Below, one piece after another: positions 26,434 through 64,000 of a DNA stretch of 64,000 nucleotides (its first letter is position 1; the number at the start of each line of letters is the position of its first letter). The DNA comes from Blastocladiella emersonii ATCC 22665 (lineage: Eukaryota > Fungi > Blastocladiomycota): positions 1,116,001 to 1,180,000 of the forward strand of contig JANHCV010000014.1 in assembly GCA_025594325.1 (NCBI GenBank). The letters run 5' to 3'. The position numbers and the translations under genes are program-made. Below the pieces are notes generated by a model. That model saw only the letters and a program-made list of their open reading frames with translations, was not told the DNA's origin and made no database searches.

Positions 26434-26648
26434 GAGTGGGCGAGCACGCGGAGACAGGGTGGGTGGTGGCGCAGCAGCGCTGGGAGATCACGTCACTTTG
26501 AGCGCGGGTGGCGCGAGGCGCGTCGCCCACGCGGCTTCGCCCTTCACTTCACAAGCTTCCTACTGACGGTCCTCTCTTCTCCCACGAATGAAACTCCATG
26601 CATTTGACACTGTAACTTGAATAAGACGTCCTCACACTGCAAACTATT

Positions 26649-27780: not shown

Positions 27781-28879
27781 CTCACGAGATGATCAAGAAT
27801 ATATGAGCAGTGCCATTGGTCTGCTGGACCCGACTGGATCTGCTCGATCGAGGTGGGCTTGGCGGTGGCCGCTGGTGCGAGGGACTGCAGCTGCTGCATT
27901 TTCTGCTGCTGACTCTGCTGAAGCACGGCTTCGAGGAGGGCGTTGAAAGGTTTGAGAGCGAGGCGCGGGTCCAACGCAAGCGCCGAGTCGACAATGTCGC
28001 AGTCCGCGGGATGCGGGACCCATGACCGAGGCGAGGGCGACGCATCCGAGCTGATCCCGGTGTGTAGCAGCGAGGTCGGCGAGCGGCTTGGGACCCCGCC
28101 ACCGTGGCGATCATGGCGGCAATCGACCAAGACCGGCTATCGTCGCCGTCGCCACGCGCGAACGAGCCAGAGTCTGGCGCGAACCCGTGGAAGACGTAAG
28201 CCCTTTTCGAATTTGTTGTTCGTCGCCTAATTTTATGGATTGAAATAGGAGAATATAATCCTAACTAGGATTCCACTATGATGAATCCCGCGAGGGAGTG
28301 GCGGTGATGAACAAAGTCTCGCGACGCGTCTCGCATCTCCCACGTGCCTGGTCACGCAATTTCGCGACGCGTCTTTCCTCTGCTCCTATCTGTCTCCCGT
28401 GGTCGTTTACAAAGCGCGATTTCGCGAAATCTGTAAGAAAAAGACAAAAGAATGAAGACACAAATCCCAAAAGAATAAGTGAGCGCTCACTGCGTCAAGG
28501 TGGAAGGAGGGTTCGCGAGGGCGGAGGGGTACCAGCCAGAGCTCGGAGATAATGACAAGATATGAATTGGACCGATTGTAGTCGATCTGTCCCCAGGGGA
28601 TCCCTCAGCCGTGTCGCGTTTGCACACCCGTCCTTGCCGCTCCGCTCGCGCTCACGCGAGGGTTAGAAACAAACTCAGGCAAAGAGCACCCCTGACCCGC
28701 TGTCTAGAGATTCTCAGTCTATGCTAATATAAAGAATAACCTGGTCTTAGGGCTCAGCCTGGCCTGACCTGGCCCGTCCTGCGCGCCTGTGCGAGTGGGG
28801 GATCCTGGGTTTTCTTGCCGCTACGCCGCCGGATCCATGTCGGACGAGCCGCACACCTCAGGTCCAAACAGCTTGAGTT

Positions 28880-29405
28880 ATCCATCTCATCGTTGGAGCG
28901 CAAGCACCGCAATGCGCTCGTCGTCGAACCCGGCGTGGCCATCGGCACGCTGTCGATCGGCAAGCCGGGTACCCAAATGTCGCTGTAGACGTTATGCTCC
29001 ACTGAGGTCACGCCCATGAGTATGACGCTCGGCGTGCTGATCCTCAACGGGCTGATCAATGCAAACAAGGGCATCATCTTCATCCCGCCCGTGGTCATGG
29101 TCCAGCACTGGAACCCCGACCTCAAGCTCGCGGAGGGCGTCGTCAAGGGCCAGATCAAGACGTCGCACCTCAGCAACTTGACGTGTCTCTCCCATCGTGC
29201 GGACCAATCCTTTGATAGAGCCGCCGTAGCTGTGCCTCGAGCTCGACGTCGACGTTGAAGTCGAGGTCATCAAGAAGCTGCTGCGCTGGCTGTACGAGGT
29301 GATGGTCACCGGCACCCTGCTTGCGGTCGAGGCCGATCAGGTCACGGCCCTGCCACACGACAACTGCCTGTACGTGTACACGAGGCGATGGGGCAACAGA
29401 TACTG
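28880..29405 (+). pseudogene. Possible degraded BTB-like coding relic (mirror copy ~58450-58975, minus strand)
   Basis: Broken frames include ELDVDVEVEVIKKLLRWLYEVMVTG, which resembles the BTB 'D..F..LL.FLYTG' motif. No continuous frame. Confidence 0.3.
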
Positions 29406-30905
29406 AGGAGAGAGACACGTTGTAACAAGAACATATCGCTGTGACGGATTGGCGATTGTATACATCTGCAAAAACACTCTTAGTGCATCGCCGCGCCTCA
29501 TGGTGATCGAGCCGACGAACGACCGACGACAACGGCGAAGAGAAAATGCCCGAAGCGCCGCGTGGCCATGAAGATGGCGGCGTGGTGGCTTGGCCGGGTT
29601 TAGTACGACAAGATGTCGTCGCGCTGAACTGGCGGCACTCGTGGTGGAACTTGTCGAGCCTGCCACATGCCCAGCTTGCGGAACTCGGGGATCGAGGTAG
29701 AACAACACGCGCAGCGGGCAAGTACCTTGGAGTCGTTGCGGCCCGCGGCCACGGTCGGACCCGACTTGTACTGTACGACTCGGACTTGACGCCGCCGTGC
29801 ACGACGTGAAGAACCATGAGGACAGTTGGTCGGACGCATGGTTGTTGGTCAGCGAGTCGGACACGTGGGACATGGCCGCGGCCGTGGGCCAAGGACCACG
29901 GCCGAGGCGATCGTCCACACGTGCGGCTCGACCACGTTCCCGGTTACTTGCTTGGCTGCGATGAACGGGCACTGAATGAGGAGAGTTGAAATAATCTATA
30001 CAAACGGGAGCGCGTGGGCGCGTGTCAGCAATTCTGATCGTCGGCGACACGGCAGTCACGACGACGACGGCGCGCTTGCGCTCAGACCGCTCTCGCGACG
30101 CATCCTTATTGAGCCCGCCGAGCCGATTGAGTCGATTGGCCGCCTCAGCATGCCGAGCGTGAGCGAGAGCAAGAGGGCGACGGCGACGGAATCCCCAAGC
30201 AATGGAACATCGGGTGCTCGATCCAGGAGGCCGCTCGGTCCGCTACCGGCACACACGCCGTGCGCGCGTGCGCGCCGCAATCCAACACACGCGACGAGGA
30301 AACTTACATAACCGCTCAGCCAACCACTGCTATCGTAGCCTCGTATCCCTTCATCGAGGCCGCATCGAGAGCGTGTCGAGAGTGCGACGAGAGTTTCGAG
30401 AGCGTGTCGAGCGAGAGCAGCGCGTTGGGTCTCGGTCGAAGGGCGGTAGGCACGCGGTGGCGAGCGTGTTCGGTTTTCAGGTATGGCTCTGCATAGATTT
30501 GATGCTGTCGAGAAAAGAACTGCATTGCATAGAGTGGGGGTGTTGCGGTGCAGTGTGCGTGGACAGCGGTGCCGGGTGCTCGGGGAGTGAGGGCGGGGGC
30601 GGGAGCGGCCTCGAGCGGGAGGCTGTCCGCACACAGTACGCGCCTCGAAGCGCGTCGCGTTTCAGCCGCACGTGGCGCCGGAAGGGGGTCGCGCTGGGGT
30701 CGCGCGCCGGCGCGTCTCGGCCTCGACTTGTCCTTCCTCCCTCCCCTGCTGGTGCTCTCAATCGGTCCTGTCAAGTTCTGCGACTTGCCGCAATTCATGT
30801 ATCACGGCCGGACTGGTCCGACTTGACCTTCGGCGACCCCCAATGAAATGACCGGCGGCCGCGGCCGCGCCCGCCTTCCCGTCGCTCGCTCGTCCCCTGC
30901 CTCTC

Positions 30906-32883
30906 TTGTGTTGCCCGGACGAACTCAACTGTGATAATGCGGGCCAAAACCTGATCTCGAGCCCCGACCGCATCGGCACTGTGGCGGGAGCCGCCGTGCA
31001 CATCCCCTTCACCGCGGTCGTCGCCTACACGTGCCATACCACTTCGTCGTACCGCACTCCTTTGAGCTTCGCGACGTTTGTTCCGCGCGCAAAACTCGCC
31101 GCTGCGTACCTCGCCGATGCCAACGCAACGGTCCTTGCCAGCGGGCAGCGCGACAACCAGGTCCTCCCATTCGACACGCTTTAGTACAACTTTGGTCCGT
31201 CTTTGCTCCTGCCGCTGCCGAGATTTCCCACCAACCTCTCTCACCTCTCTCTTAGACCCGAGAACATGGACCACCGTCCCAGCGACTTTGCCCGGCCCGT
31301 TGGACCGCTACTCGCACGGCCTCGTCGCCTTCAACTCGACAATATACCTGTACGGCGGGATCGGCAACCAGGGTGCGACCACGGACCTGTGGCAACTCTC
31401 GTCGGGTTCGGATTCCGGTTCGCTGCAGTGGTCGCGCATCACGCCGCGGCCGGGACCTTCCGGCACCGTGGCCGTGACGCCGCCGCCCCTGTACTGGCCG
31501 ACGGTGGTCGCGGCCGACGATCTCGGCAAGATCATTGTCATTGGCGGGCTCACGCTGCAGTCGGGCTACTACTCTTACTCGCGGCTCATGTTCGAGTTTG
31601 ACACGCGTATGGCCTTTCGTCCTTCCAATGCTCTGTTTAATGATGCCGTACCCTCACACAATAAGCACGCTCGTGTGGTCTCAGCGCAACAGCAGCTCGC
31701 AACCGACCATCTCGACGTCGGCCGCGGTCGCCGCCTCGGCTGTCTCGCGGCCCGCGTCACGGATCATCCACGGCTTCACTGAGTACGCCGTGCAGAGCTA
31801 CCATGTCCCGACCGACACGTGGTTCTTTGATCCCATCGACAGCCTGACCTCGCCCCTCGACTCGGCCACCGTCATCGACCCGCGCCTGTACCGGTCCGCG
31901 ATGCTGTTTGGCAACAACTGCGCGGTGCTCTTCGGCGGGCAGATCAAGTCCGTGACGCCGTCCTCGACGGTCCGCACGTGCTACACGGACGTGCTGCACA
32001 TCGTAGACCTTGACTGCTGGGCCATGGTCCACGCGACGTCGCTACCCGGACGGCACCGCATGGGCCACGCCGCGGTACGGCGCGGCGACGTCGAGCTGGT
32101 GATCGCCGGCGGGTTCAACGGCGTGTCGCAGTCGGACGTGGCTCGCGCGCGCATCGCACTGCCGGCGGCCAACGCGACAGCACGGGCGGCGCGCTGCGCC
32201 CGGACGTGGTGCGCGCGGTCTAACGACTGCGCCGACTGCGGGGCCAAGCCCGGGTGCGGGTGGTGCGGCGACGCGTGCGTGTACGGGTGCTCGGCCGTCA
32301 CCTCGATAGCGTCGTGCCCAGCGCGCGTCCCGCTGACGCTCGGCGCGCCCAAGACGGGCCGGACCGCGGGTCTGGCGGTCATCGAGTTCGACGCCTTCAT
32401 CAACGCGCCCGACAACGTCCTGTTCATCCGGTACGACAGCGACGACGTGGGCAGCGGCGACCCGCCGTTCACGGGCACCATGCGTAACTTGTCGCTCAAC
32501 GCCACGTTCATCACGCAGTCGACGGCGACCGTGTCCCCAAGCACCCACCGACGCGCGCCGGTTCGGCGGGTGGCACGTCTTCCGACTCCAGTACTCGCTG
32601 CTAGTGTCGGCCGAGGGCTTCTCGTACTGCAACCCGATCGATTGCACTCACGCGGACGCGCAGACGGTGCCATAGAGTAGCGTCTCTCTACAATACGTCT
32701 CTCACGAGGTATTGCGTAGCTCCTCGGCGTCGGGATCATCTGCCTCATGGTGTCGGGCACGCTGGCGATGCGTCGTCTCGCGCGGCGACACCCGGCAAAC
32801 GCCAACGTCGGCGCGCTGCCCAAGTTCCGGCCGTCCATCGACCAAGTCGACGCCAAGGTGCTGACCGACTGCGCCGTGCCGTG
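30906..32883 (+). pseudogene. Attractin/MEGF8-like Kelch-PSI-TM gene, 5'-truncated and frameshifted (copy 1)
   Basis: Kelch repeats (RYSHGLVAFNSTIYLYGG, RMGHAAV...LVIAGGFNG), PSI motif CADCGAKPGCGWCGDAC and a TM segment. Apparent frameshift near 32540 and no clear start codon. Confidence 0.6.
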
Positions 32884-33102
32884 ACGATCGCGGAGGCGCC
32901 CAAGCCGGTGGCCACGTCCGCGAGCAGCGCGATGTCGTAGACGCGGTCGCTGCTCTAGAGCGAGATCAAGACGTTGGTGTCGCCTTCACTCGCGGACTGC
33001 GGCGGCTCGACCTGACCTCGCTATGACCAGCAGCTCTACTGTTTGTAAAGAGTGAATATATAGCCACCATTTCACACACCACGAACACCAGGCCGATGTC
33101 GG

Positions 33103-46759: not shown

Positions 46760-48475
46760 ATGAAACCACTACCCGCAGCGGGACCGAGGATACCCTTGCT
46801 CGCGCTCCTGGCGCTGCTCCTCGCCACCGCCGCGGTGCACGCCGGCGCCGGCGCCGATCCGCGGGAGCGCATCCTCACCACGGCGCGACAGGCATTTGAC
46901 CTCAACTCCTCTGTCGCCATCCTCCCCGACGGCGCCCGCCAGCAGCAGGAGCCGACGGCCGACTCGCGCTTCGTCCGCGGCCCGCGCCGCTTGCTCGTCT
47001 CGCCGACGGGCGAGGCCACCGAGCTCGCCACCGCCTCGCCCGACCCGTCCGCCGCATCGTCAACCGGATTGCTGTACCAGGTGGCGTGCGACCGCGCCGT
47101 CCCGGCCTCGTTGTGCAACCGCGCGACGCTCGCCGTCGACGGGGCCGCGCGCCGGCTGCTCGCTGCGTTCACCTTCCCGCGGCCCGTGTACCTCGCCGCC
47201 ACCTTCTTCCGCCCGTGCGGCGCCGAAACCGCGGCCGAGCTCGACCAGTGCGATGAGAAGAACACGCTCGGCGCCGCTGCGCCCGCCGCGCAGTGGCCCG
47301 TGCGGTTCCCCGGTCTCGCCACTGCGCTGCCCAGCTCAGCGTGGGTACCCGGATACCCCGGCGTCGTCGCGGTCCCGCAGGCGCTCGCGCGCCAGCTCAA
47401 CGTCACGGTGCGCGGCCGGCCCGTCGCCGCCGTCAACGCCGGCGTCGATATCATTGCCGGGTTCAACGCGCTTGCCGACTGGTGGGTCGCCGGCGACCCC
47501 GCCGAGATCCGCGCGGGCCAGGAGGACCTCGAGTACGCCGTGCTCCACGAGGCCATGCACGGGCTCGGGTTCGGGATCGACTCGTGGACCTACGACGCCG
47601 ATAAGTTCCCGAACGCGCTCCTGCCCAACGTCGCGTCCGCGTCGCCGACCGCCGGATCGGCGCTCGTCCAGTTCCCCGCCCTCTGGGACGCGTTTGTCGT
47701 CGCTGCACAGTCTAACGGGTCGTGGACGCCGTGGCTCGCCGGGTACGCCGACTGGACCTCGGCCGCCGCGGCTGCGGCTGCAGCGGGATTGGCTGCGCCC
47801 AAATCGGCGGCAACGCTTCTCGCCGCGTCGCTCGCGGACCAGCGCGTCGCTTCGCAGGCCGCCTGGCGGCTCGCGGCAGCCACAACCGACGGCGCCGTCG
47901 CCGTAGCTGTCCCGGCCGACGTGCCGCTCAACGCGTCTCTGGTCACCCTTCGCAACACGCGCCATTACCTCCTCCCCGTCGAATCCGCCGCCACCCCGTT
48001 CGCCCCCGGCTCGAGCCTGTCGCACTGGTCGTGGGCTGTGGCGTACACGGCGCCGCCGTCGAAATGGCGCGAGCTCGCCGCCACAGGCGGCACCGCCAAC
48101 ACCATCTCGAGCCCCGACGTACTCATGGCCGCGACTACGCTGCCCGTGTCGCTCCGTGGCGAGGCCGGCCAGCGCGCCATCGCGACCGACGCCGGGTGGA
48201 TCGGGCCCGCTACGCGCGCCGTGATGCGGAACCTCGGGTTCGCGGTCCGCGGGATGCCGCCCGCCGACGCGGTGGGCGCCGGAGGCGTGCTCAGCACCGG
48301 CGAGGTGCTCGTGGATGCCGCCGATCGCACGCTGGCGCCCGGACCGGGAGCAACGGGAGGCGGGGGTGACGGTGGCAGGGGACCTGCGACGGCGGCGTCG
48401 GCCGCGGTAAATGTGTGTAGATTAGAGCGGACGATGGCGCTCGCGGTGGTCGTTCTCCTCGCGGTTTCGGTTTGA
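46760..48475 (+). CDS. Secreted, possibly GPI-anchored zinc metalloprotease (HExxHxxGF), paralogue B
   Basis: MKPLPAAGPRIPLLALLALLLATAAVHA signal, VPQALARQ, DIIAGFNALADWW, AVLHEAMHGLGFG, GSSLSHW and a hydrophobic C-terminus after a Gly/Ala spacer. Confidence 0.78.
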   Translation: MKPLPAAGPRIPLLALLALLLATAAVHAGAGADPRERILTTARQAFDLNSSVAILPDGARQQQEPTADSRFVRGPRRLLVSPTGEATELATASPDPSAASSTGLLYQVACDRAVPASLCNRATLAVDGAARRLLAAFTFPRPVYLAATFFRPCGAETAAELDQCDEKNTLGAAAPAAQWPVRFPGLATALPSSAWVPGYPGVVAVPQALARQLNVTVRGRPVAAVNAGVDIIAGFNALADWWVAGDPAEIRAGQEDLEYAVLHEAMHGLGFGIDSWTYDADKFPNALLPNVASASPTAGSALVQFPALWDAFVVAAQSNGSWTPWLAGYADWTSAAAAAAAAGLAAPKSAATLLAASLADQRVASQAAWRLAAATTDGAVAVAVPADVPLNASLVTLRNTRHYLLPVESAATPFAPGSSLSHWSWAVAYTAPPSKWRELAATGGTANTISSPDVLMAATTLPVSLRGEAGQRAIATDAGWIGPATRAVMRNLGFAVRGMPPADAVGAGGVLSTGEVLVDAADRTLAPGPGATGGGGDGGRGPATAASAAVNVCRLERTMALAVVVLLAVSV

Positions 48476-48811
48476 ATAAATCATCCATTCCATGTGTGTA
48501 TACTTTCAGCTCGCGCCGGCGTCGTACACGCGTGCTCCTTGGCGACGGCCGCCACGACGCGCGGCGGCACCGCAAGCGCGGCGGCCGTGAACTTGCGTAA
48601 GAACCCGGCCCCCGTCGCACCACCGCTGCTTCCCAACGTCACGGCGAGAAACTCGCGGACGACGAACGTCGAAACGAAGTGGGTCAGCGTACCGTGGGCG
48701 GCGCGGCGCAGACAGCCTGGCGGCATCTGAACTTGGCCTTTGCGTCGTACAGCATCTCGAAGATGGCGGCGTAGCCTTCAAGTAAACTTACTCCCTTGGT
48801 GGCGATTTGGG
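48231..48811. repeat. Direct repeat copy 1 (partner 54303-54883)
   Basis: Offset 6072 bp. Appears identical from 48294/54366 to 48811/54883, and the overlapping ORF translations are identical. Confidence 0.92.
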
Positions 48812-48973: not shown

Positions 48974-50455
48974 TCAGGCTGCGGGACCATCTACCGACTT
49001 CTTCTCGCGTTGCCAGCAGCCGCACTTCCAGCATGTGTACGCGAGGAGCACACAAAGAACGAGCGCCGCGAGACCGCCATACAAGTAAAAGGCCTCCATA
49101 ACGCCACGGAAGTTGGACTCGTTGTACTCGCGCTCCCGTTGCTCGCGCTCGAGGTCGTCGGCATAATTGATTGATCGGGCAAAGCTGTTGCTGGTTGCTG
49201 CATCAAAGACAATGCGAGTGCGTTGCTGGTTGGGGTACAGGGCAACGACCTCGAGCTGTTCGCGCCCTGCGATCACCATGAACGCCCGCCCGTCGTCCTT
49301 GCTGGCTGGCGTGGTGACAATGGCAGTAGTGCCAGCTTGAGCCAGAGCCGACGAGTTTTGATCAAGAAACGAACCGCGATCGCTACCAAGTTGGCACCAT
49401 TCGGCAAACAAGGGAGCGGTGGCGCCAAGCACGTCAAGGCCGCCGACCGAGATCACGAACACCTTGGATCCTTCGCCGGACGGGTCGTACGCGACCGACT
49501 GGTGGAAAGCGCGCGGCTTCAACAACACCGATCGCGAGAGCGCCCATTCGTTGCGCGACAGGTCAAAGGTCCAAATGTCGCGAAGCGTGTTGATGCCGTC
49601 GTGTCCGCCGGTGAGAATAAGGGTCGAGGCGCCAAGGCGAGTAAGGGCACCGTTCCTGCGAGGCGCTGGACGCGCAGCCTTGGGATCCCCCAGCGGGACG
49701 AGTTTGACCTTGCCGTCCTACATCGTGCTCAATTGTCAGTTCGGAACAGATCCCGTCCTATTTCGCGGCCAACGCACCGAATCAATCGAGTACAGCTCGC
49801 CGCTCTTTTCCAGGACGTAGACCGAGTTGTCGGCGGCGGTCGACCAGCGCGCCGACTTGCTCGAGCTGACTGTCGCCCAGTCAATCGTGGGCTGAACTGC
49901 GCCACCGGTCGCACCGCTGGCGGCGCCACCATTGGCAGCGGAAGTAAACTTGGCCGATCCCACGGCGTAGTCAAGCCCGTCGAGGGAACCACTCGCGCTG
50001 CCGCTGTTGGCGGTCGTCGCAGGAACGCTGCTGAACAAGCGGACGCGATTGGGTGCAGCTGAACCGACAGCGGGGAAGGCGTGCGGCAGGAGCCGGGCGT
50101 CCGTGCCACCGAGCGTCCAGTTGAGCGTGCGAAAGGCGGCGGGAGCTTCGTTCGAGTTGGTCTTGATCCGAGCCGTGAGCGGAAGCGTGGTGGCAGTCGA
50201 GTCGACGGTCCACGGGACGCCAAAGTCAAGCACGGCCAACTCGTTGCCCTGCACGAGGATCACAGCCTCGCTGGCCGTGCCGAGGTTGAGGGCGCCCTTG
50301 GGCACGAGAAGGGCAGACGCGTTGCCCAGCCCCGCAGGCACGTTTAAGTCGCTTGAGGAGGGTTTGCTGGCGCCGATCGCATTCTGTGCGAGGCTGCCGC
50401 CAAACGTGAAGCACAGCAGCGTCAAGGTTAAGAGCAAAGAGTTCATTGCAATCAT
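48974..50455 (-). CDS. Type I membrane protein with Kelch-like motif (paralogue 3)
   Basis: Signal MIAMNSLLLTLTLLCFTFGGSLA, ASALLVPKGALNLGTASEAVILVQGNE, DGINTLRDIWTFDLSRNEW, TM followed by CWKCGC. Two introns in 49620-49790. Confidence 0.72.
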
Positions 50456-50885
50456 GTTCGCCAGCTGGGGGAGAGAGCAACTGTCCAGCAGCAACCTCCA
50501 GCTCAGCGTTCAGCACGAAAGGTGTGGCGCTGACCACGCTGTGGCAACGTGGGCGCACGGCAGAAATAGTCAGGCCGTGGGCCGCGTGGGCCATCACGGC
50601 GGGCATCAGCGTTGTCTCGCGATCCGCCAGAGCAAACCGCGATGCCCACCCACGCCCTCGGTTCCTCCCTCCCTCCCCCCTCCCCTCGCCTTGTTTGCCG
50701 CCACACAAAACGCCCGCCTCGCCCGCAACTCGTCCTCTCTCCCTTGGCCGTCTGCGTTCTGCCCCGCGGATCTCCAACGTAGGTGCTGAGCCCTCTTGTA
50801 TCGCGCGCACTCCGTGGTACTCACCACCGATCTGCAACGCACTCCCTTCTTCGTCCGTTCGCTTCATGCTTGCCGTCTAGACCAC

Positions 50886-53857
50886 ATGCCTCCTCCTCGT
50901 CCGCCTTCGCTGAAGCGGCTCGCCCTCTTTTGCGCGCTGATCGCTCTCATCGGCTCGCTTCACGTCATCCGAGCTGGTCGACCTGTGTATGATGGCCGCA
51001 ACCTGCTCAACCTGGTCGGCGGCGAGATCGCCGACGAGGGCAGCATGTTTCTGTGGAGCATCCGCCAAGGCGCGAACGGAATCGGCGACGGCTTACTTTT
51101 CAGCCCGCTTTCTGCGCTCTCGTTCTTCTACACGATTTTTGCCTGCCAAGATTACTCGGCGTTCAAGGGCGTGAAGCTTACGCTCACTGCTCCTGCTGGG
51201 TCGAACTTTCAGGTCACTATCCAAGACGCTGGCGTTGGATGCCAGGGTAAAGGCGCTAGTTACTCGAAGCGCACCGACTCTCTCATCTACTTCACTGGGC
51301 AGGGCCCTCAAGAGCTGTTTATCAGCTTTGACTATTACTCGATTTTCAATCCCTCGCGGACCAAGGCTTTAATCTTCTCTGGCTTCACCAATCCTCTCGA
51401 GCAGTTCATCCTGCATCGCATCGAGTTTGACGACGGCCCGCCCGCTCCCCAAATTTGTCCTCGGTACGTTTCTCTGGCCGTTTTGCTCCCGTCAGACGCG
51501 TTCTCACGTTCGGCGTTCATCCTTAGCTTTGACGAATCTCCTGTTTTCGAGTCGTTCAGCACGCTCGATGCGTGGGTCGACGATTCGCAGGCTAACGGGG
51601 GCCCGAACAACTACTTCATCGACAACAAGTCTTCGCTCGTTTTCTCTGTCAACCCGACTGCGTCTGTCCGGCCTAAACTAAAGCTTAAAGACCGCCGCTT
51701 TGTTGGCCCTGGTCGCCACGAATGGCGTGTCTACACGCCGATGCGTGAGCCGGGACAGGTCACCAGTATTGGAGCATTCCTGTGTACGTATTTCCTTCGC
51801 GTCGATTCCGAGATTCGTGTGCCTCCGCGTGCCGCGAAGTAACACCGACATGGCTATCCTACCACCAATTATGGTTGTGATCACGATCATGATTGTAATC
51901 AGGATGGGCTAACATGTTACGACAACTCCCTGAGTAAGTTTCGAATCTTGACTAACACAAAACCCCACCATCCAACTCCTGCAATCCCTCCATCATCGTC
52001 TGCATCAATCATTCTCCCTCTACTCTCTTCTTTCGATCAGACTTCGACGATTACCACGAGGTCGACTTTGAAATTGGTTACGGCGCTGCGGACTTGCGCG
52101 AGAAACTTGGCGCCCGTGATCATCAACCTGTGGCCTACATGACGACTCAGGCAACTGACGGGGGCTCCTGGATTACCCTGGACGGAACTCAAGTTCTCAT
52201 CGACGGAAACTCCTGGCACGACTTGGCCATTGATCTGGATCTCGACAAAACTGGAACTCTTTTCATTGTGAGTTGGTGGATTGACGGCACTCGTGTCCAG
52301 CGTTCTGGCCAATCATGGGGCCCGGCCAACATTGGAGCTGGCTTCACCGCTCACGTTTCCCAGGAAAACTTGTGGTGGATGGGCCTTGGTCCTGGCGAGA
52401 TCTCGAGACCTGCCCAGAAACCAGTCGATGCCAATGCTCAGCCTGCCATGGCAGTCTTTGACACCTACCGCTTTACGCCCACCGCTGGATGTGGGGGAGA
52501 TGGGCGTGGTAAACCTGACCCTATCCCTGCCGATTCGAGCTTCACTCCTGCTGCGCCCACTTCCGGCGCTCGTAAATGCAACGGTCTGGCTCAAATCTGC
52601 AACAAGGAGCTTCACAAAGTCGTTTTTCCTGGTGCACACAACGCTGGGACTGATGACCTGACTTGCCGGTACTTCGTTGAAACTGACTGCGGGATTGGTG
52701 AAGCACGCACAACTAATGCCACTTCTCACTTGAGGCGGCTACCACGCCGCGGTGCTCCTCAACGCAACGCCACCACCGACCTTGCGCACGTTGATGGATC
52801 AGCTCTTCCCAACAATAACCGAACTTCCACAGCAGCCCCCATGGGTCCCCTTCCGCCCCCGCCACCGCCGTGTAACCCGTTGAAGCCCATGTCAACGTGT
52901 TACACCGGAATTTATCCAATCCAGTGCTTGTTTGGGAATCAAGACGCGCCGGTGTCTGCTTTGCTCGACCGTGGAGTCAGATGGTTTGACCTTGACTTTT
53001 GCGGTAATCGCCTGGACAATCCAGGGGTGATTTCCATTTGCCACAAGGCCGACGGTGTTGGCGGTGTCGCTTACGGCCCAACGGCTGCGGATTTGCTTGG
53101 CGAGGTTCATATAACTGCGTCGCTCGTTCCATTTTCCGGCCACTAACCCAAACATCTACTCCAAACTGCAGTTGAGTCGCTGGCTCAGACGCCCGAGCAA
53201 TCGCAACGAGCTTGTCGTGCTTTTCCTTTCTGATCTCAACAACGGCATGAACGATGCGAAGGACGAGCTCGTTAAGTTGATCCGCACACAGCTTGGTCTC
53301 CTGCTTTACTCGGGCACGAACGCGGTGAAGACGAAGGTTAGTACGCTTCTCAACGACGGTCCGCGCGTCATTTTGACCGGGAAGTTTCCGCCCAGTGACT
53401 TGTCTGCGTCGCTTCAGAGTTTCTATCACGACGTACGGAGTATCCCGACGGCTTATTGTGGACGATCTCTAACCACCCTTGACCTCGATTGCTAGCTCAA
53501 ACTCATCGACACGTACAATTCGAAAACCACGCTTCCGTCTGGTGAACTGATCAAGCTAGCGTGTGAAACCGCGAAGGCGAATGATCAGCGGGTCATCCTC
53601 TCTCTGATGGGCGCTCCCAACTTTGTTACCGTTGTCGGAGGCAAGTGCAACTCCGTCCTGCAGCAGCTCGTAAGATTTTTGGACTAGCTGTCAGATTCTA
53701 CGTGCTAACTTTCGTTGCTCGTCTCATGTAGGTCGATATCCCTGAGCTCCTCCGCCATATGCCGCGGGATTGTCCTGTCCAGACCATCCTGAAGGACTTT
53801 GCTCGAGATTCCAATGGCATGTTCAGGTTCGCGGAGTATCGCAACATGGCGGAGTAA
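50886..53857 (+). CDS. Secreted fusion protein: CBM-like beta-sandwich, GH16-like hydrolase and PI-PLC X-like phosphodiesterase
   Basis: Signal peptide. WRVYTP..SIGAFL|YFDDYHEVDFEIGYG (ExDxE) across intron 51784-52040. CNGLAQIC..VFPGAHNAG, NQDAPVSALLDRGVRWFDLD and WLRRPSNRNELVVLFL. The 3' exons are approximate. Confidence 0.65.
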
Positions 53858-54099: not shown

Positions 54100-54547
54100 G
54101 ATATCATGTGACCGCGAGACACCAGATTCTGGCTACTCAGTCTTGCTGTTGCGCTCGACCCCGCCGGGTGTGCCGGGGCTCACCGTTGACCCCCGGCTTG
54201 AACGTATTGCACTGGTCATGGGCCGTGGCGTACACGGCGCCGCCAGCGAAACCGCGACGGACGCTGAGTGCATCGGCCCCGCGGCGAACGCTGTGCTGCG
54301 CAACCTCGGGTTCGCGGTCCGCGGGATGCCGCCCGCCGACGCGGTGGGGGCGGGTGGCGTGCTGAGCACCGGCGAGGTGCTCGTGGATGCCGCCGATCGC
54401 ACGCTGGCGCCCGGACCGGGAGCAACGGGAGGCGGGGGTGACGGTGGCAGGGGACCTGCGACGGCGGCGTCGGCCGCGGTAAATGTGTGTAGATTAGAGC
54501 GGACGATGGCGCTCGCGGTGGTCGTTCTCCTCGCGGTTTCGGTTTGA
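54100..54547 (+). pseudogene. C-terminal fragment of metalloprotease paralogue B
   Basis: HWSWAVAYTAPP and ATDAECIGPAANAVLRNLGFAVRGMPP are diverged from 48020-48290; the sequence is then identical to the paralogue B 3' end. No catalytic HExxH. Confidence 0.8.
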
Positions 54548-54883
54548 ATAAATCATCCATTCCATGTGTGTATACTTTCAGCTCGCGCCGGCGTCGTACA
54601 CGCGTGCTCCTTGGCGACGGCCGCCACGACGCGCGGCGGCACCGCAAGCGCGGCGGCCGTGAACTTGCGTAAGAACCCGGCCCCCGTCGCACCACCGCTG
54701 CTTCCCAACGTCACGGCGAGAAACTCGCGGACGACGAACGTCGAAACGAAGTGGGTCAGCGTACCGTGGGCGGCGCGGCGCAGACAGCCTGGCGGCATCT
54801 GAACTTGGCCTTTGCGTCGTACAGCATCTCGAAGATGGCGGCGTAGCCTTCAAGTAAACTTACTCCCTTGGTGGCGATTTGGG
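54303..54883. repeat. Direct repeat copy 2, containing the protease B 3' end and a third ORC4 remnant (54562-54860, minus)
   Basis: Matches 48231-48811 and ends 4 bp before the right arm of the inverted duplication. Confidence 0.92.
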
Positions 54884-54890
54884 TCTGGCT

Positions 54891-56950
54891 CTAGAGCAGC
54901 GACCGCGTCTCCGACATCGCGCTGCTCGCGGACGTGGCCACCGGCTTGGGCGCCTCCGCGATCGTCACGGCGCAGTCCGTCAGCACCATGATGTCGATCT
55001 GGTCAATGAACGGCCGGAACATGAGCTGCGCGCCGACTTTTCCGTTGGCCGGGTGCCGCGACGCAACCCGCCGGACTGCCAGCGTACCCAAAATCTTGAG
55101 GCAGAGGATACCCCCGCCCAAAAACTACGCGACGATGTAGCCAGTGTGAGAGATCGTAGGCGAAAGAGACATCGTCAAAAAACTGTCCCGTCCGCGCTTT
55201 CGATCCAGTGTAGTCGACCGAGTTGCAGTACGAGAAGCCCTCGGCCGACACTAGCAGCGAGTACTGGAGTCGGAAGACGTGCCACCCGCCGAACCGGCGC
55301 GCGTCGGTGGGTGCTTGGGGACACGGTCGCCGTCGACTGCGTGATGAACGTGGCGTTGAGCGACAAGTTACGCATGGTGCCCGTGAACGGCGGGTCGCCG
55401 CTGCTCACGTCGTCGCTGTCGTACCGGATGAACAGGACGTTGTCGGGCGCGTTGATGAAGGCGTCGAACTCGATGACCGCCAGACCCGCGGTCCGGCCCG
55501 TCTTGGGCGCGCCGAGCGTCAGCGGGACGCGCGCTGGGCACGACGCTATCGAGGTGACGGCCGAGCACCCGTACACGCACGCGTCGCCGCACCACCCGCA
55601 CCCGGGCTTGGCCCCGCAGTCGGCGCAGTCGTTAGACCGCGCGCACCACGTCCGGGCGCAGCGCGCCGCCCGTGCTGTCGCGTTGGCCGCCGGCAGTGCG
55701 ATGCGCGCGCGAGCCACGTCCGACTGCGACACGCCGTTGAACCCGCCGGCGATCACCAGCTCGACGTCGCCGCGCCGTACCGCGGCGTGGCCCATGCGGT
55801 GCCGTCCGGGTAGCGACGTCGCGTGGACCATGGCCCAGCAGTCAAGGTCTACGATGTGCAGCACGTCCGTGTAGCACGTGCGGACCGTCGAGGACGGCGT
55901 CACGGACTTGATCTGCCCGCCGAAGAGCACCGCGTAGTTGTTGCCAAACAGCATCGCGGACCGGTACAGGCGCGGGTCGATGACGGTGGCCGAGTCGAGG
56001 GGCGAGGTCAGGCTGTCGATGGGATCAAAGAACCACGTGTCGGTCGGGACATGGTAGCTCTGCACGGCGTACTCAGTGAAGCCGTGGATGATCCGTGACG
56101 CGGGCCGCGAGACAGCCGAGGCGGCGACCGCGGCCGACGTCGAGATGGTCGGTTGCGAGCTGCTGTTGCGCTGAGACCACACGAGCGTGCTTATTGTGTG
56201 AGGGTACGGCATCATTAAACAGAGCATTGGAAGGACGAAAGGCCATACGCGTGTCAAACTCGAACATGAGCCGCGAGTAAGAGTAGTAGCCCGACTGCAG
56301 CGTGAGCCCGCCAATGACAATGATCTTGCCGAGATCGTCGGCCGCGACCACCGTCGGCCAGTACAGGGGCGGCGGCGTCACGGCCACGGTGCCGGAAGGT
56401 CCCGGCCGCGGCGTGATGCGCGACCACTGCAGCGAACCGGAATCCGAACCCGACGAGAGTTGCCACAGGTCCGTGGTCGCACCCTGGTTGCCGATCCCGC
56501 CGTACAGGTATATTGTCGAGTTGAAGGCGACGAGGCCGTGCGAGTAGCGGTCCAACGGGCCGGGCAAAGTCGCTGGGACGGTGGTCCATGTTCTCGGGTC
56601 TAAGAGAGAGAGGTGAGAGAGGTTGGTGGGAAATCTCGGCGCGGCAGGAGCAAAGACGGACCAAAGTTGTACTAAAGCGTGTCGAATGGGAGGACCTGGT
56701 TGTCGCGCTGCCCGCTGGCAAGGACCGTTGCGTTGGCATCGGCGAGGTACGCAGCGGCGAGTTTTGCGCGCGGAACAAACGTCGCGAAGCTCAAAGGAGT
56801 GCGGTACGACGAAGTGGTATGGCACGTGTAGGCGACGACCGCGGTGAAGGGGATGTGCACGGCGGCTCCCGCCACAGTGCCGATGCGGTCGGGGCTCGAG
56901 ATCAGGTTTTGGCCCGCATTATCACAGTTGAGTTCGTCCGGGCAACACAA
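54891..56950 (-). pseudogene. Attractin/MEGF8-like Kelch-PSI-TM gene (copy 2)
   Basis: Mirror of 30906-32883. The tail reads LMFRPFIDQ...EAPKPVA and shares the frameshift seen in copy 1. Confidence 0.6.
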
Positions 56951-59900
56951 GAGAGGCAGGGGACGAGCGAGCGACGGGAAGGCGGGCGCGGCCGCGGCCG
57001 CCGGTCATTTCATTGGGGGTCGCCGAAGGTCAAGTCGGACCAGTCCGGCCGTGATACATGAATTGCGGCAAGTCGCAGAACTTGACAGGACCGATTGAGA
57101 GCACCAGCAGGGGAGGGAGGAAGGACAAGTCGAGGCCGAGACGCGCCGGCGCGCGACCCCAGCGCGACCCCCTTCCGGCGCCACGTGCGGCTGAAACGCG
57201 ACGCGCTTCGAGGCGCGTACTGTGTGCGGACAGCCTCCCGCTCGAGGCCGCTCCCGCCCCCGCCCTCACTCCCCGAGCACCCGGCACCGCTGTCCACGCA
57301 CACTGCACCGCAACACCCCCACTCTATGCAATGCAGTTCTTTTCTCGACAGCATCAAATCTATGCAGAGCCATACCTGAAAACCGAACACGCTCGCCACC
57401 GCGTGCCTACCGCCCTTCGACCGAGACCCAACGCGCTGCTCTCGCTCGACACGCTCTCGAAACTCTCGTCGCACTCTCGACACGCTCTCGATGCGGCCTC
57501 GATGAAGGGATACGAGGCTACGATAGCAGTGGTTGGCTGAGCGGTTATGTAAGTTTCCTCGTCGCGTGTGTTGGATTGCGGCGCGCACGCGCGCACGGCG
57601 TGTGTGCCGGTAGCGGACCGAGCGGCCTCCTGGATCGAGCACCCGATGTTCCATTGCTCGGGGATTCCGTCGCCGTCGCCCTCTTGCTCTCGCTCACGCT
57701 CGGCATGCTGAGGCGGCCAATCGACTCAATCGGCTCGGCGGGCTCAATAAGGATGCGTCGCGAGAGCGGTCTGAGCGCAAGCGCGCCGTCGTCGTCGTGA
57801 ATGCCGTGTCGCCGACGATCAGAATTGCTGACACGCGCCCACGCGCTCCCGTTTGAATAGATTATTTCAACTCTCCTCATTCAGTGCCCGTTCATCGCAG
57901 CCAAGCAAGTAACCGGGAACGTGGTCGAGCCGCACGTGTGGACGATCGCCTCGGCCGTGGTCCTTGGCCCACGGCCGCGGCCATGTCCCACGTGTCCGAC
58001 TCGCTGACCAACAACCATGCGTCCGACCAACTGTCCTCATGGTTCTTCACGTCGTGCACGGCGGCGTCAAGTCCGAGTCGTACAGTACAAGTCGGGTCCG
58101 ACCGTGGCCGCGGGCCGCAACGACTCCAAGGTACTTGCCCGCTGCGCGTGCTGTTCTACCTCGATCCCCGAGTTCCGCAAGCTGGGCATGTGGCAGGCTC
58201 GACAAGTTCCACCACGAGTGCCGCCAGTTCAGCGCGACGACATCTTGTCGTACTAAACCCGGCCAAGCCACCACGCCGCCATCTTCATGGCCACGCGGCG
58301 CTTCGGGCATTTTCTCTTCGCCGTTGTCGTCGGTCGTTCGTCGGCTCGATCACCATGAGGCGCGGCGATGCACTAAGAGTGTTTTTGCAGATGTATACAA
58401 TCGCCAATCCGTCACAGCGATATGTTCTTGTTACAACGTGTCTCTCTCCTCAGTATCTGTTGCCCCATCGCCTCGTGTACACGTACAGGCAGTTGTCGTG
58501 TGGCAGGGCCGTGACCTGATCGGCCTCGACCGCAAGCAGGGTGCCGGTGACCATCACCTCGTACAGCCAGCGCAGCAGCTTCTTGATGACCTCGACTTCA
58601 ACGTCGACGTCGAGCTCGAGGCACAGCTACGGCGGCTCTATCAAAGGATTGGTCCGCACGATGGGAGAGACACGTCAAGTTGCTGAGGTGCGACGTCTTG
58701 ATCTGGCCCTTGACGACGCCCTCCGCGAGCTTGAGGTCGGGGTTCCAGTGCTGGACCATGACCACGGGCGGGATGAAGATGATGCCCTTGTTTGCATTGA
58801 TCAGCCCGTTGAGGATCAGTACGCCGAGCGTCATACTCATGGGCGTGACCTCAGTGGAGCATAACGTCTACAGCGACATTTGGGTACCCGGCTTGCCGAT
58901 CGACAGCGTGCCGATGGCCACGCCGGGTTCGACGACGAGCGCATTGCGGTGCTTGCGCTCCAACGATGAGATGAATAACTCAAGCTGTTTGGACCTGAGG
59001 TGTGCGGCTCGTCCGACATGGATCCGGCGGCGTAGCGGCAAGAAAACCCAGGATCCCCCACTCGCACAGGCGCGCAGGACGGGCCAGGTCAGGCCAGGCT
59101 GAGCCCTAAGACCAGGTTATTCTTTATATTAGCATAGACTGAGAATCTCTAGACAGCGGGTCAGGGGTGCTCTTTGCCTGAGTTTGTTTCTAACCCTCGC
59201 GTGAGCGCGAGCGGAGCGGCAAGGACGGGTGTGCAAACGCGACACGGCTGAGGGATCCCCTGGGGACAGATCGACTACAATCGGTCCAATTCATATCTTG
59301 TCATTATCTCCGAGCTCTGGCTGGTACCCCTCCGCCCTCGCGAACCCTCCTTCCACCTTGACGCAGTGAGCGCTCACTTATTCTTTTGGGATTTGTGTCT
59401 TCATTCTTTTGTCCTTTTCTTACAGATTTCGCGAAATCGCGCTTTGTAAACGACCACGGGAGACAGATAGGAGCAGAGGAAAGACGCGTCGCGAAATTGC
59501 GTGACCAGGCACGTGGGAGATACGAGACGCGTCGCGAGACTTTGTTCATCACCGCCACTCCCTCGCGGGATTCATCATAGTGGAATCCTAGGTAGGATTA
59601 TATTCTCCTATTTCAATCCATAAAATTAGGCGACGAACAACAAATTCGAAAGGGTTTACGCCATCCACGGGTTCGCGCCAGACTCTGGCTCGTTCGCGCG
59701 TGGCGACGGCGACGATAGCCGGTCTTGGTCGATTGCCGCCATGATCGCCACGGTGGCGGGGTCCCAAGCCGCTCGCCGACCTCGCTGCTACACACCGGGA
59801 TCAGCTCGGATGCGTCGCCCTCGCCTCGGCCATGGGTCCCGCGTCCCGCGGACTGCGACATTGTCGACTCAGCGCTTGCGTTGGACCCGCGCCTCGCTCT

Positions 59901-60074
59901 CAAACCTTTCAACGCCCTCCTCGAAGCCGTGCTTCAGCAGAGTCAGCAGCAGAAAATGCAGCAGCTGCAGTCCCTCGCAGCAGCGGCCACCGCCAAGCCC
60001 ACCTCGATCGAGCAGATCCAGTCGGGTCCAGCAGACCAATGGCACTGCTCATATATTCTTGATCATCTCGTGAG

Positions 60075-61206
60075 CTACTCCGTCCCGCTCCGGATCCGAC
60101 CCGCGACAGTCCACCACGGCACCTCGGGAGCGCGCTCGGCGGTGGGGTCCCAATGTTCGTCCTCAATCGGGAAGAGCAGGACATTGGTCTTCGGGGTCAC
60201 CATGAGTAGCGTATTGTCGGGAATCTTGCACCAGTCGGCGCGGTTGAAGGTGAGCGGTTCTGTTCGCGCGTGGGAGAGCGAGTCAGCGCAGTCCGCGGGA
60301 CTCGGTCGAGGAACAATGAACGTACCGCTCGAGATGACGACAATATCCTCGCGCTTGCCCGCCTTGCGCATGTGGTAGTCGCCGTCGGCGTCAGTCGTAA
60401 ACTCGGACCCGCTCGACCAGTACAGCGACGCGGCCTCGCGCGCCGACGTGTTCGTGTAGCGCGTGCACAGGATCGACTGCCCGTCGGTCACGGCAAAGTT
60501 GAGCAGCGACGGCGTGCTGGCGACGCCCGCGGCGACCGAAAGCTCGTTGATGGTGGCGATCGTCTTGAGCAGCGCGTCCTTGAGCTCGTACGGGCTGAAC
60601 CGCGCCCGTGCCGGGTCGCGCAGCAGCGACAGGAACAGCGCAAACGCCCACTCCGAGTCCGTGTTCCCGTGGACCGTGTTGAACAAGTCGTCGGGGATCC
60701 GCGCCTGCAAAGCGCGTTTGATCTTGGCAAAGTGGGCCATGTAGCCGTTGTGCTGGAACAACAGGCTGCCAAACGAAAAAGGGTGGCAGTTCGTCTCCGA
60801 GATTTGGAAGCCGGCCGAGGCCGCGCGCACGTGGCAGAAGACGAGGCCAGAGCGGACGTGGTTGCTTATCCGCGTCAGGCTACACGCACATGTCAGCGCT
60901 ATGCACGAAACGAGCGAGTTTTGAAGAGAAAAGAGCGCACTTTAAGTTGCTCCATGCGGGGAGGGTGGACGTGAACACACACGGCGGTTCGGGGTGCGAC
61001 GACTCCTCGCCCTCGCTGCCCGCGGCGGCCGCGTCGCCGTAGCCGCCGTACCAGCCCACGCCGAAGCCGTCGCCGTTGAGCGGGCGCACCTCGTCGAGGC
61101 GCAGGCGGCAGTCAAAGGACTGGTTGATGATCGAGTGCTGCGGACGCGTGAGGAGGTCCGCGAGCAGGACGGGCGTCTTTGACTTGAAGCAGATCCAGCG
61201 GCACAT
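60075..61206 (-). CDS. DUG3: Class II glutamine amidotransferase (Dug3-type), copy 2
   Basis: Both exon translations are identical to copy 1. Confidence 0.92.
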
Positions 61207-61421
61207 AATAGTTTGCAGTGTGAGGACGTCTTATTCAAGTTACAGTATCAAATGCATGGAGTTTCATTCGTGGGAGGAGAGAGGACCGTCAGTAGGAAGC
61301 TTGTGAAGTGAAGGGCGAAGCCGCGTGGGCGACGCGCCTCGCGCCACCCGCGCTCAAAGTGACGTGATCTCCCAGCGCTGCTGCGCCACCACCCACCCCG
61401 TCTCCGCGTGCTCGCCCACTC

Positions 61422-64000
61422 TCACTCGACGAGCCGCTGGTCGAGGCCTGTGAAGTGCGATAACGCCCGCCGGCCAAAGTGCCCGCGGGCCCATCTCAAA
61501 ACAGCCTGGACCAGGTACGCGGCCACGGCAGGCACGATGCGGGAACCCGCAGTCGTCGCGGCGCTGGACGAAGAGGATGAGGGTGCCGCGGCCATGGTCG
61601 CGAGGTTGAACGTGAGCAGAACGAGGAGCATGACGCGCAGCTCCATGCCCGCCCACATGGTTTCTAGGAAGACGGCGGTATCCTCTAAACAGACGCGTTC
61701 CCACGCATCCAGTGAGTGAGGCGGGGTTCGCGATGGGAGGCGCGTCCGAACGCACCGCGGCAGAAGAGCGAGACGTTGGACTCGGTCTGCGGGTACGATC
61801 CGAGCCATCGGTCGGACCACGTCCGCTGGATGACGCGGTACCGCTGTTCCTTGAGGTTCTACTCGTGCTCCAGGTCAGCGGGCGGCTTGCGTCACGAGAA
61901 TCAAGGTGTAACGTACCTGGTCGAGGAAACGGGTGAAGAATACGTTAAGCGTCTTGTGCCGGCGGCTCGACACGGGTGCGGTCGACACTACCCCGAGCCG
62001 GTCCGTGAACGGCGCCGTAATCCACTTGGTCGCCCCACCACCACCTTGACCCCACGACGACGGGCGGCGAGGAGCAACGGTACCGCGTGTCGATGATAGA
62101 AGCGGTTCAGCAGCATCATCGCCTGACCCAGAGACATGCTCGATGGCGTCAATCGCACGGTGTAGACTCGGTGAGGCAATCACTTCGAACACAACGTCGC
62201 CGCCTGCCGTCAGCCCGCGGCGGCCGACGACGTCCGATGCCTCGCGCCTGAGGTTGCCCACGAGCGACGCCATGTCCGTGTCGGCCTCGGGAAACACGGA
62301 TCGGCCGTGGAGGTAGAAGCCGCGCGGGTCATCGCCGTCGAGCAGAATGAGCGACACGTTGGCGACGGTCAGCAGGTCGACAAAGTCCATGGGCGGGTTG
62401 CTTGCAAACCGCTCAATTGCGAGAGTGACCACGAGGAACTGCGCCGCGGCAAGCCCAAGAAACGCGAGCGACTGCTGCGCGACGGCGACGAACCAGTTGG
62501 GAGCCGCAGGGACGAGGACGGCGACCGCCAGGGCCGTGAGTCCGAGATGAATGCGGCGGTACGTGGCGACCTCGACCAGCTTGCGCGCAACGTGGACGCT
62601 TCGCCAAGCGCTTACCGTGCCTGGGACCGCAAGAGCACCCGCGTTCACGCTGCCGTCGGCGCTGATCCGTGGCTTCTCCCAGTCGACGACGTAGACACGC
62701 GTTTGACACTGTCGGAGCGTGGTGACGGCGACGTGGAAGGTCTGCACGACGGCGGCCGCCACGAGCGCGCCGAAGAACGCGCCCTCGTCGGCCGATCCGG
62801 GCAGCCACATGAACCGCCGCGTCGCCTGGAACGTGTAAAAGACATAAACGTAAATGGCCACGCACAGCGCTGCCGCAGTAACGACGGGCGCCACGACTGC
62901 GGCGAGCGCGTCGACGAGGAGGACCAGCGACCACGCGTCCGTCACAAGATCTTGGCGCCGGTTGCGCTGAGCGCGTGCCGTTGCCCCCGCAAGCCATGTC
63001 GCAACAATGACGCAAGCTGTGATGGGTGCCACGATACCGACGGCTGACCAGAACCGCGCCGTCGACATGATGAAGCGCACCGTGACTGTGGCCGTTGGCG
63101 GCGAGACGGCAAGCGGGGTCAGCGACTCGGCGTGTGTCAGCTTGAGAATGGGATATTGGGTGTCGGATCCGGCCATGGCCGTGGTCAGCGTCGCAGAAGT
63201 GAGCCAGCGGACACCGCCGTTCCCAGAGGAGCGGCCCAGCACGCGGTCGTCGTAGACAAAGAATCGGCGGACACGCTGGCCCCGGGCCACGATGACGGGG
63301 ATAGGCGACCACCGGGGTGCAGCATCCGCAATGTAAACTTCGAAGGTCGCGTCGCGCCACGCTGCCGGATCGATGACACAGGTCAGCGAGGTGCCGCGAC
63401 CAAGAGCGGGAATTGTGACGTTGGAATCGCCCAAACTTGGAGTGCTCGAGACAGAGTTGGGCAGTGTCGAAGGGCTGCAAAGCCGTTGGATCCAGGAGGC
63501 CCAGTCCTCGGCTTGCTCCACGAGTCCGGTCGTCGCCGAGTACCGTACTACGGTTACGTTGAGAGTGCTTGCCGACGATGAGAGCGTCATGGCATCGTCC
63601 TCGGACACGGGCAACATGGCACTCGGCACGGTTGGCGCGCTATTGGCCGAGTACGCGGCACAAATGGGGTGACGCGGGTCGCCGTACACGAGAGCGCACA
63701 AGTTTGCAAGTCGTTGGCATGCAGCAGGCGATATCGTGGCCGTGGTCATCGAGGTAGATGGGGTGGTGGCGCACTGGTAGAGCGCTGGCAAGAACTGTGA
63801 TTTGAGGTAGCTCGATGCCGACGACTGCGCGACAATGCCCCCGGCGTTCGTCGTGACGTTGACGGGCAGCAGATTGAAGTTGGCGTAGGCCGACTCCATG
63901 GACGCGACAAATGTTGAGGGCATGCAAACAGGTGCATCGCCCCCGTCGCTCGCAATGTAACCCGTAGGGCAGGTGCACGAATGCCCGTTTGTCGAGGGCG
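61422..64000 (-). CDS. TMEM67: Meckelin, copy 2 (5' end outside window)
   Basis: The 682-aa ORF 61875..63923 matches copy 1 except for T>M, M>SV, D>A and L>V. Confidence 0.85.

Follow-up and report, generated by a model that had tools for sequence, protein, structure and literature searches.

A predicted secreted enzyme of Blastocladiella emersonii that joins a CBM-like module, a divergent GH16-type domain and a probable PLC-like phosphodiesterase

A three-module gene in B. emersonii

The subject of this study is a 64,000-nucleotide stretch of the genome of the fungus Blastocladiella emersonii ATCC 22665 (Blastocladiomycota; assembly GCA_025594325.1, contig JANHCV010000014.1, positions 1,116,001 to 1,180,000 of the forward strand), hereafter called the window. 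From the sequence and its table of open reading frames (ORFs), a gene of six exons and 819 codons was delineated at window positions 50886..53857 on the plus strand, running from an ATG at 50886 to a TAA at 53855-53857. Its product is likely to be a secreted modular enzyme, in which a domain resembling carbohydrate-binding modules (CBMs) of families 8, 11 and 30 is followed by a domain of the glycoside hydrolase family 16 (GH16) type and by a domain resembling phospholipase C (PLC). The GH16-type domain represents a divergent and uncharacterised branch, and its union with a PLC-like domain constitutes a lineage-specific architecture which was found in no other organism. An initial annotation of this DNA had already described a secreted protein with these three modules; the translations contain all of the motifs that it quoted, where it had placed them, and the proposed architecture holds in that a predicted signal peptide, three modules and an exon shared by both catalytic modules (exon 3) are present.

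The gene model was established with the aid of two paralogues in the same genome, i.e., a tandem copy that lies downstream, some 17 kb away and in the same orientation (protein identity over exon 3, 62%; nucleotide identity, ~70%), and a copy at locus C5:988910-992758, referred to below as the C5 copy. All five introns are of the GT..AG type with CTAAC-like branch sites. The tandem copy, which reads CPRFNDAP without the 21 in-frame codons, confirms intron 1, and the SIGAFL/Y/FDDYHE junction created by removal of intron 2 is confirmed by the C5 copy, which reads through SIGAFLYFDDYHE without interruption. Furthermore, equivalents of all six exons were recovered, in the same order, from the tandem copy. 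Since the C-terminal part of the GH16-type domain and the N-terminal part of the PLC-like domain are encoded by one exon, they do not belong to separate genes, barring an internal promoter. For the searches reported here, single exons, the contiguous domain of the C5 copy or database proteins served as queries.

The middle module has a GH16 fold and an intact catalytic motif

The GH16-type domain was modelled with AlphaFold2 (AF2) using its contiguous counterpart in the C5 copy (positions 1246-1944 of that locus), which is 58-68% identical to the two GH16-type pieces of the window gene. The resulting model has a predicted local distance difference test score (pLDDT) of 95.4, and all of the top 50 rows returned by VIA-align are GH16 structures, with Z scores of 17.6-19.3 and root-mean-square deviations of 2.4-3.6 Å over 172-214 residues. 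The list is headed by lichenases and the fungal transglycosylase Crh5. Comparison of a family profile with the sequences of the PDB returned weak matches, eleven of the thirteen being to GH16 glucanases, and PDB sequence searches with exon 1 and exon 3 returned nothing or low-complexity noise.

The GH16 catalytic motif, ExDxE, is present in the window gene as EVDFE, which is the regular beta-strand variant of this motif as it occurs in lichenases, xyloglucan endotransglucosylase/hydrolases (XTHs) and Crh enzymes. An hhalign comparison with a Crh-like, PF00722-positive GH16 protein encoded by the same genome places HELDFEIGYG of the present family on DEIDFEMLGGN. In an alignment of 61 family members from bacteria and fungi, the E, D and E of the motif are nearly invariant, as are RPK, a Gln, two Trp residues and the Glu of S-x-ENL. 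The GH16 fold and the intact motif, both proposed beforehand, are thus borne out by the AF2 model, the VIA-align matches, the 61-member alignment and hhalign. The proposed distinction from Crh/Kre6-type domains is supported likewise: PF00722 does not match the domain at E values up to 10 (the C5 domain) or 0.1 (ten homologues), yet detects at least three further GH16 loci in the B. emersonii genome.

The N-terminal module resembles CBMs at the level of fold

In the AF2 model of exon 1, residues 9-24, in the region of the predicted signal peptide, form a lone helix, and homologues start in a similar manner. The remainder of the exon is modelled as a beta-sandwich of approximately 155 residues with a mean pLDDT of 85. 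With VIA-align, the best structural matches to this model are CBM8 of Dictyostelium (Z 14.9), CBM30 (Z 14.3-14.4), CBM11 (Z 13.9) and the Complex-I assembly factor NDUFAF1, which has the CIA30 fold (Z 13.9), and a Foldseek search gave an E value of 1e-6. In one homologue, the corresponding module gives a sub-threshold match to the CIA30 Pfam family. The CBM-like nature of this module, as suggested in the initial annotation, is therefore confirmed at the level of the modelled fold by the matches to CBM8, CBM30 and CBM11, and glycan binding is considered a putative function.

The C-terminal module is probably a PLC-like phosphodiesterase

Motifs, profile comparisons, language-model neighbours and the joint loss of residues in the C5 copy together make it probable that the C-terminal module is a phosphodiesterase resembling phosphatidylinositol-specific PLC (PI-PLC), although of the three modules this one has the weakest evidence. 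The window gene and its tandem copy both encode, in this order, FPGAHNAG, FGNQD, LLDRGVRWFD[LM]D and SICH, which matches the order of catalytic elements in Ca2+-dependent PI-PLCs, i.e., His-Asn, Asn-Gln, Arg..Asp-x-Asp and His. When a profile of the three paralogues was compared by hhalign with two bacterial PF16670 proteins, an E value of 0.018 was obtained (0.009 without the columns of a variable loop), with His-Asn and GVRxF[DE]LD in register, and none of 300 column shuffles matched the score of this alignment. In addition, the four motifs are co-linear with SSHNT, VGNQL, RGCRCVEVD and VYH of the canonical PLC X domain encoded by the same genome. Language-model searches with the whole region of the C5 copy and with the N-terminal half from the window gene returned clusters of the PI-PLC clan exclusively.

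In the C5 copy, AHN is replaced by ARG and D-L-D by D-L-A, and the second His is also gone. Such a joint loss is expected if these residues form a single catalytic set. The Cys-rich, secreted context resembles that of the fungal and plant 'PLC-like phosphodiesterases' (PF26146/PF26178), with which the CNG..C motif may also be shared.

The first two motifs are separated by a variable insert. It might be read as an intron, since by implication the public gene model treats the insert of the C5 copy in this way, but this possibility was ruled out by the pattern of differences from the paralogue at the first, second and third codon positions (35/29/57) and by the reading frame, the only stop-free frame being the coding one. 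Within the insert are N-glycosylation sequons, a run of Pro, conserved cysteines and the conserved sequence RRLPRRG.

Alternative readings of the two catalytic modules

Several observations weigh against the three-module enzyme as described above. Pfam and NCBIfam scans of all exon pieces and homologues gave nothing usable, and neither PF00388 nor PF16670 matches at the locus. The GH16 model derives from a paralogue and not from the split domain of the window gene itself, and secretion is a prediction from features of the sequence. As regards the PLC-like module, the comparison with the PLC X domain is weak when taken by itself, 15 of 300 shuffles having equalled its score; the language-model scores (0.79-0.88) lie under the trust level of the tool; and none of exons 4-6 matches a PLC family significantly (in the case of exon 4, by profile comparison). 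It is conceivable that the C-terminal module lacks phosphodiesterase activity, being either an unrelated Cys-rich domain with chance motifs or a PLC-derived, non-catalytic binding domain. Such a reading would accommodate the lack of recognition by any curated hidden Markov model (HMM), the lack of a match in a PDB sequence search with a profile of the PLC half, the span of only ~60 residues over which the module aligns to PLC families, the large insert that splits the putative barrel, and the persistence of one paralogue without catalytic residues. It is nevertheless held to be unlikely, given that four motifs occur in canonical order and register with respect to two different PLC families, that no shuffle reached the PF16670 score, that two separate language-model queries led to PI-PLC-clan neighbours only, and that the losses in the C5 copy affect exactly the putative catalytic residues, all of which are kept by the window gene and its tandem twin.

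A similar question arises for the middle module, which might be a lectin-like or otherwise non-hydrolytic jelly roll comparable to the pseudo-glucanase Rv0315 or to the C-terminal domains of GH43 proteins. While Foldseek matches do include inactive concanavalin-like folds (GH43 C-domains, Emp47 and Rv0315 orthologues), the conservation of the motif residues and of several further polar residues from bacteria to fungi, the register of the motif with that of a canonical GH16 enzyme and the location of some bacterial members in polysaccharide-utilisation loci render such a non-hydrolytic role distinctly unlikely. A GH16-type glycanase domain followed by a PLC-like phosphodiesterase is the preferred reading of these two modules.

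The GH16-type branch is mostly bacterial

When 1.84 billion cluster representatives were searched with a profile, 215 relatives of the GH16-type domain were returned. In a scan of one genome per bacterial or archaeal species, at least 201 stretches were found in bacterial genomes, overwhelmingly those of Bacteroidota (e.g., Flavobacterium, Lutibacter, Formosa, Prolixibacteraceae and Bacteroidales), with some in Verrucomicrobiota, Planctomycetota or Lentisphaerota. The typical bacterial member is a lipoprotein-like protein of approximately 240 residues. Some bacterial proteins contain two tandem GH16-type domains, and one such tandem-domain protein is encoded by a genome of Bacillota (Anaerovoracaceae), amid relatives that are otherwise from Bacteroidota. 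All named eukaryotic members are from early-diverging fungi, i.e., Spizellomycetales (Geranomyces, Powellomyces, Thoreauomyces and Borealophlyctis), the blastoclad Sorochytrium and Endogone; no member from Dikarya, animals or plants is present among the 215 representatives.

The immediate neighbours of the gene in 41 diverse bacterial loci include SusD-like proteins and arylsulfotransferase-like propellers (six loci each), as well as GH20, GH18 and glucosamine-6-phosphate isomerase (two loci each). In Formosa algae, the gene is flanked by genes for GH20, NagB, a sodium-solute symporter and an amidohydrolase, a neighbourhood which hints at glycans containing N-acetylhexosamine (HexNAc) as a possible substrate lead. 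Five of the ten bacterial homologues that were looked up are labelled 'GH16 domain-containing protein' in UniRef, and their NCBI label is hypothetical protein. The resemblance to GH16 proteins of Bacteroidetes, which the initial annotation had put forward, is essentially right because UniRef names members in this way, and the branch is indeed abundant in that phylum.

The branch is little studied, and no characterised member was found. It is present with its full catalytic motif in hundreds of genomes of Bacteroidota, Verrucomicrobiota and Planctomycetota and in zoosporic fungi. As standard domain libraries are blind to it, routine counts of carbohydrate-active enzymes (CAZymes) may miss this branch.

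The fusion is so far confined to three genes of one species

Among the sequences examined, the combination of a GH16-type and a PLC-like domain is limited to three B. emersonii genes, namely the window gene, its tandem copy and the C5 copy. The B. emersonii genome that was searched comprises 21 contigs and 32.65 Mb; the published assembly comprises 21 contigs and 34.27 Mb (PMC9730499). Within this genome, no relative of the PLC-like part was detectable beyond the three paralogues. No PLC motifs were found in the 159 proteins examined, in the orthologous locus of Sorochytrium including 8 kb of flanking sequence, or in an 846-residue relative that shares the first two modules. The C-terminal regions of the fungal members vary, one having a tail that resembles a glycosylphosphatidylinositol (GPI) signal and others having unrelated regions. 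A word-index search of protein databases with the PLC half returned nothing, and the same type of search with the PLC region of the C5 product returned only that product and no database entry for the spliced protein of the window gene. The PLC-like module was probably fused on in the Blastocladiella lineage, with two duplications thereafter.

NCBI H9P43_009112 of B. emersonii ATCC 22665 has the same sequence as the product of the C5 copy. The public model of this gene (1134 residues) splices out a stop-free, Thr/Ser/Ala/Pro-rich stretch of ~140 codons within the PLC-like domain and extends into an unrelated C-terminal region of ~360 residues; this model may merge two genes.

Origin of the GH16-type domain

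Two unrooted trees of the GH16-type domain were constructed, one with FastTree (202 rows) and one with IQ-TREE under a site-mixture model (79 rows), in which the window gene and its tandem copy were represented by their exon-3 part only. In both trees, ten named fungal and nine unnamed rows are split from all named bacteria (FastTree support 91; Shimodaira-Hasegawa-like approximate likelihood-ratio test (SH-aLRT) support 95 in IQ-TREE). The three B. emersonii copies form one clade (FastTree 95; SH-aLRT 97), to which Sorochytrium, Borealophlyctis and an unnamed relative lie closest, all with the same CBM plus GH16-type layout.

It had been proposed that the GH16 domain was acquired horizontally. 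Taken as a recent transfer, in which the gene or its GH16 part came from Bacteroidota and was subsequently joined to a PLC-like gene already present, this proposal is very improbable. It would fit a family that is overwhelmingly bacterial and lacks members from Dikarya, animals and plants among the 215 representatives, as well as the lower GC content at third codon positions (GC3) of the window gene and its tandem copy (63-65%, as compared to 68-90% in the other long ORFs of the window; exon pieces were pooled for these counts). On the other hand, the domain groups with those of early-diverging fungi, apart from all named bacteria, its nearest relatives in Sorochytrium and chytrids have the same layout, a spliceosomal intron lies within the domain, the three paralogues are old and diverged (43-62% protein identity over exon 3), and the C5 copy has a typical GC3 of 90%. 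Recent horizontal acquisition is thus not supported by the trees, the introns and the paralogues, and was dropped in view of the fungal clade recovered in both trees. Within the fungi, the domain appears to have been inherited vertically among early-diverging lineages, the wider branch being mostly bacterial (Bacteroidota and the Planctomycetota-Verrucomicrobiota group). Given that the trees are unrooted and that Dikarya, animals and plants are not represented among the matches, an ancient transfer from a bacterium to a fungus, or loss elsewhere, is possible.

Gene organization and surrounding region

The positions of the exons, introns, modules and motif sites are listed in Table 1.

Table 1. 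Features of the three-module gene (positions are those of the window)
Feature	Position	Strand	Basis or remark
Exon 1: signal peptide, then CBM-like beta-sandwich	50886-51463	+	
Predicted signal peptide, ~30 residues	50886..50975	+	Basic n-region, hydrophobic core, VIRA/G (translation)
CBM-like beta-sandwich (remainder of exon 1)	50976..51463	+	AF2, VIA-align, Foldseek
Intron 1, 63 nt, in frame and stop-free	51464..51526	+	GTACGT..CTCAC..TAG; 21 codons absent from tandem paralogue
Exon 2: N-terminal third of GH16-type domain (RPK, WRVY, SIGAFL)	51527..51783	+	Translation, family alignment
Intron 2, 257 nt	51784..52040	+	Splicing gives SIGAFLYFDDYHE, contiguous in C5 paralogue
Exon 3	52041-53104	+	One uninterrupted 354-codon open frame
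Start of exon 3: C-terminal two-thirds of GH16-type domain	52041..52489	+	Translation; fold of paralogue domain
Catalytic motif E-V-D-F-E (GH16 ExDxE)	52058..52072	+	Translation, 61-member alignment, hhalign
Pro/Gly/Ser-rich linker	52490..52573	+	Translation
End of exon 3: N-terminal half of PLC-like domain	52574..53104	+	Motifs, profile comparisons, language-model neighbours
PLC-like motif site, His-Asn	52637-52642	+	Alignment
PLC-like motif site, D-L-D	52988-52996	+	Alignment
PLC-like motif site, second His	53042-53044	+	Alignment
Variable insert, ~87 codons, coding, within PLC-like domain	52664..52924	+	Codon-position differences, frame
Intron 3, 67 nt	53105..53171	+	GTTCAT..CTAAC..CAG
Exon 4: PLC-like domain, continued	53172..53432	+	ORFs, paralogue mapping
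Intron 4, 63 nt	53433..53495	+	Sequence
Exon 5: PLC-like domain, continued	53496..53669	+	Paralogue mapping
Intron 5, 62 nt	53670..53731	+	Sequence
Exon 6: end of PLC-like domain and stop codon	53732..53857	+	Paralogue ends at same place

The overall GC content is 56-57% in the window gene and its tandem copy and 71.5% in the C5 copy; along the window, GC content falls at 10-16 kb and 50-54 kb. The three-module gene and its upstream neighbour on the minus strand make up a 5.4-kb unit, which lies between two direct repeats of 631 bp (48181-48811 and 54253-54883; 97.5% identity). This neighbour (48974-50494) encodes a protein with a signal peptide and without a Pfam match; it was duplicated along with the three-module gene, with ~71% nucleotide identity to the tandem locus (C6:1182252-1183201), and a further copy with 77% nucleotide identity is present within the window at 15333-16704. 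The right copy of the 631-bp repeat abuts an inverted duplication of more than 9.1 kb, in which 54884-64000 is 98.7% identical to 23858-32965 and which reaches the end of the window; this is either an artefact of assembly or a segmental duplication that took place very recently. An ORF inside this duplication (55175-56320, minus strand) encodes a Kelch beta-propeller of the Attractin/LZTR1 type.

Proposed function

In the proposed mode of action, the beta-sandwich would hold the protein on a beta-linked glycan, on which the GH16-type domain would act as a retaining endo-glycanase or transglycosylase, and the PLC-like domain would perform Ca2+-dependent cleavage of a phosphodiester in the same substrate layer or surface. 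The phosphodiester might be that of a GPI anchor, of an inositol-phospholipid anchor or of a glycan with phosphodiester bridges, and the target may be the fungus's own wall, e.g., in the processing of GPI proteins at encystment, or foreign material.

The linking of GPI proteins to fungal walls is a step that has long been unresolved, and in B. emersonii a wall is formed within minutes when the zoospores encyst. A more specific proposal, which must be regarded as a very long shot, is that the protein is a wall-building device in one polypeptide. In this scheme, GPI-anchored proteins or inositol-phospholipid-linked glycans would be cut at the phosphodiester by the PLC-like domain, and the GH16-type domain, being of the Crh-like regular-strand type, would attach the glycan so released, by transglycosylation, to beta-glucan or chitin of the wall that the CBM-like module holds in place. 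If this were true, the protein would provide a tractable model for the linking step. More generally, the fusion, which is so far confined to one species, suggests substrate pairs for testing, i.e., a glycan together with a phosphodiester, and the three paralogues, two with and one without the PLC catalytic residues, amount to a natural experiment.

Comparison with known systems

The N-terminal module shares the beta-sandwich of the beta-glucan-binding, type-B modules CBM8, CBM30 and CBM11 and of the CIA30 fold at an identity of ~10-12%, and the sequence tools used assign it to no CBM family. The middle module has the beta-jelly-roll of clan GH-B, as in lichenases (3i4i, 1u0a and 1mac) and Crh5 (6ibu), with Z scores of 18-19. 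As in lichenases and Crh enzymes, ExDxE is located on an inner strand, where it lines up with DEIDFE of the Crh-like GH16 protein, and the C-terminal 'W.IDG' and 'FD.Y.F' strands of lichenases also align with this branch. However, identity to known GH16 enzymes such as lichenases and Crh is only 10-19%, and the branch is distinguished from them by an invariant set of its own (RPK, WRVY, TSQ and S-x-ENL) and, in its fungal members, by the N-terminal CBM-like module. In the C-terminal module, His-Asn, Asn-Gln, Arg-x-x-[DE]-x-Asp and the second His follow one another in the same order and register as in the PI-PLC cores of PF16670 (PI-PLC-C1) and PF00388 (PLC X). The module differs from these cores in escaping both HMMs, in the insert of ~87 residues between the first two motifs, and in its position, fused behind a glycoside hydrolase.

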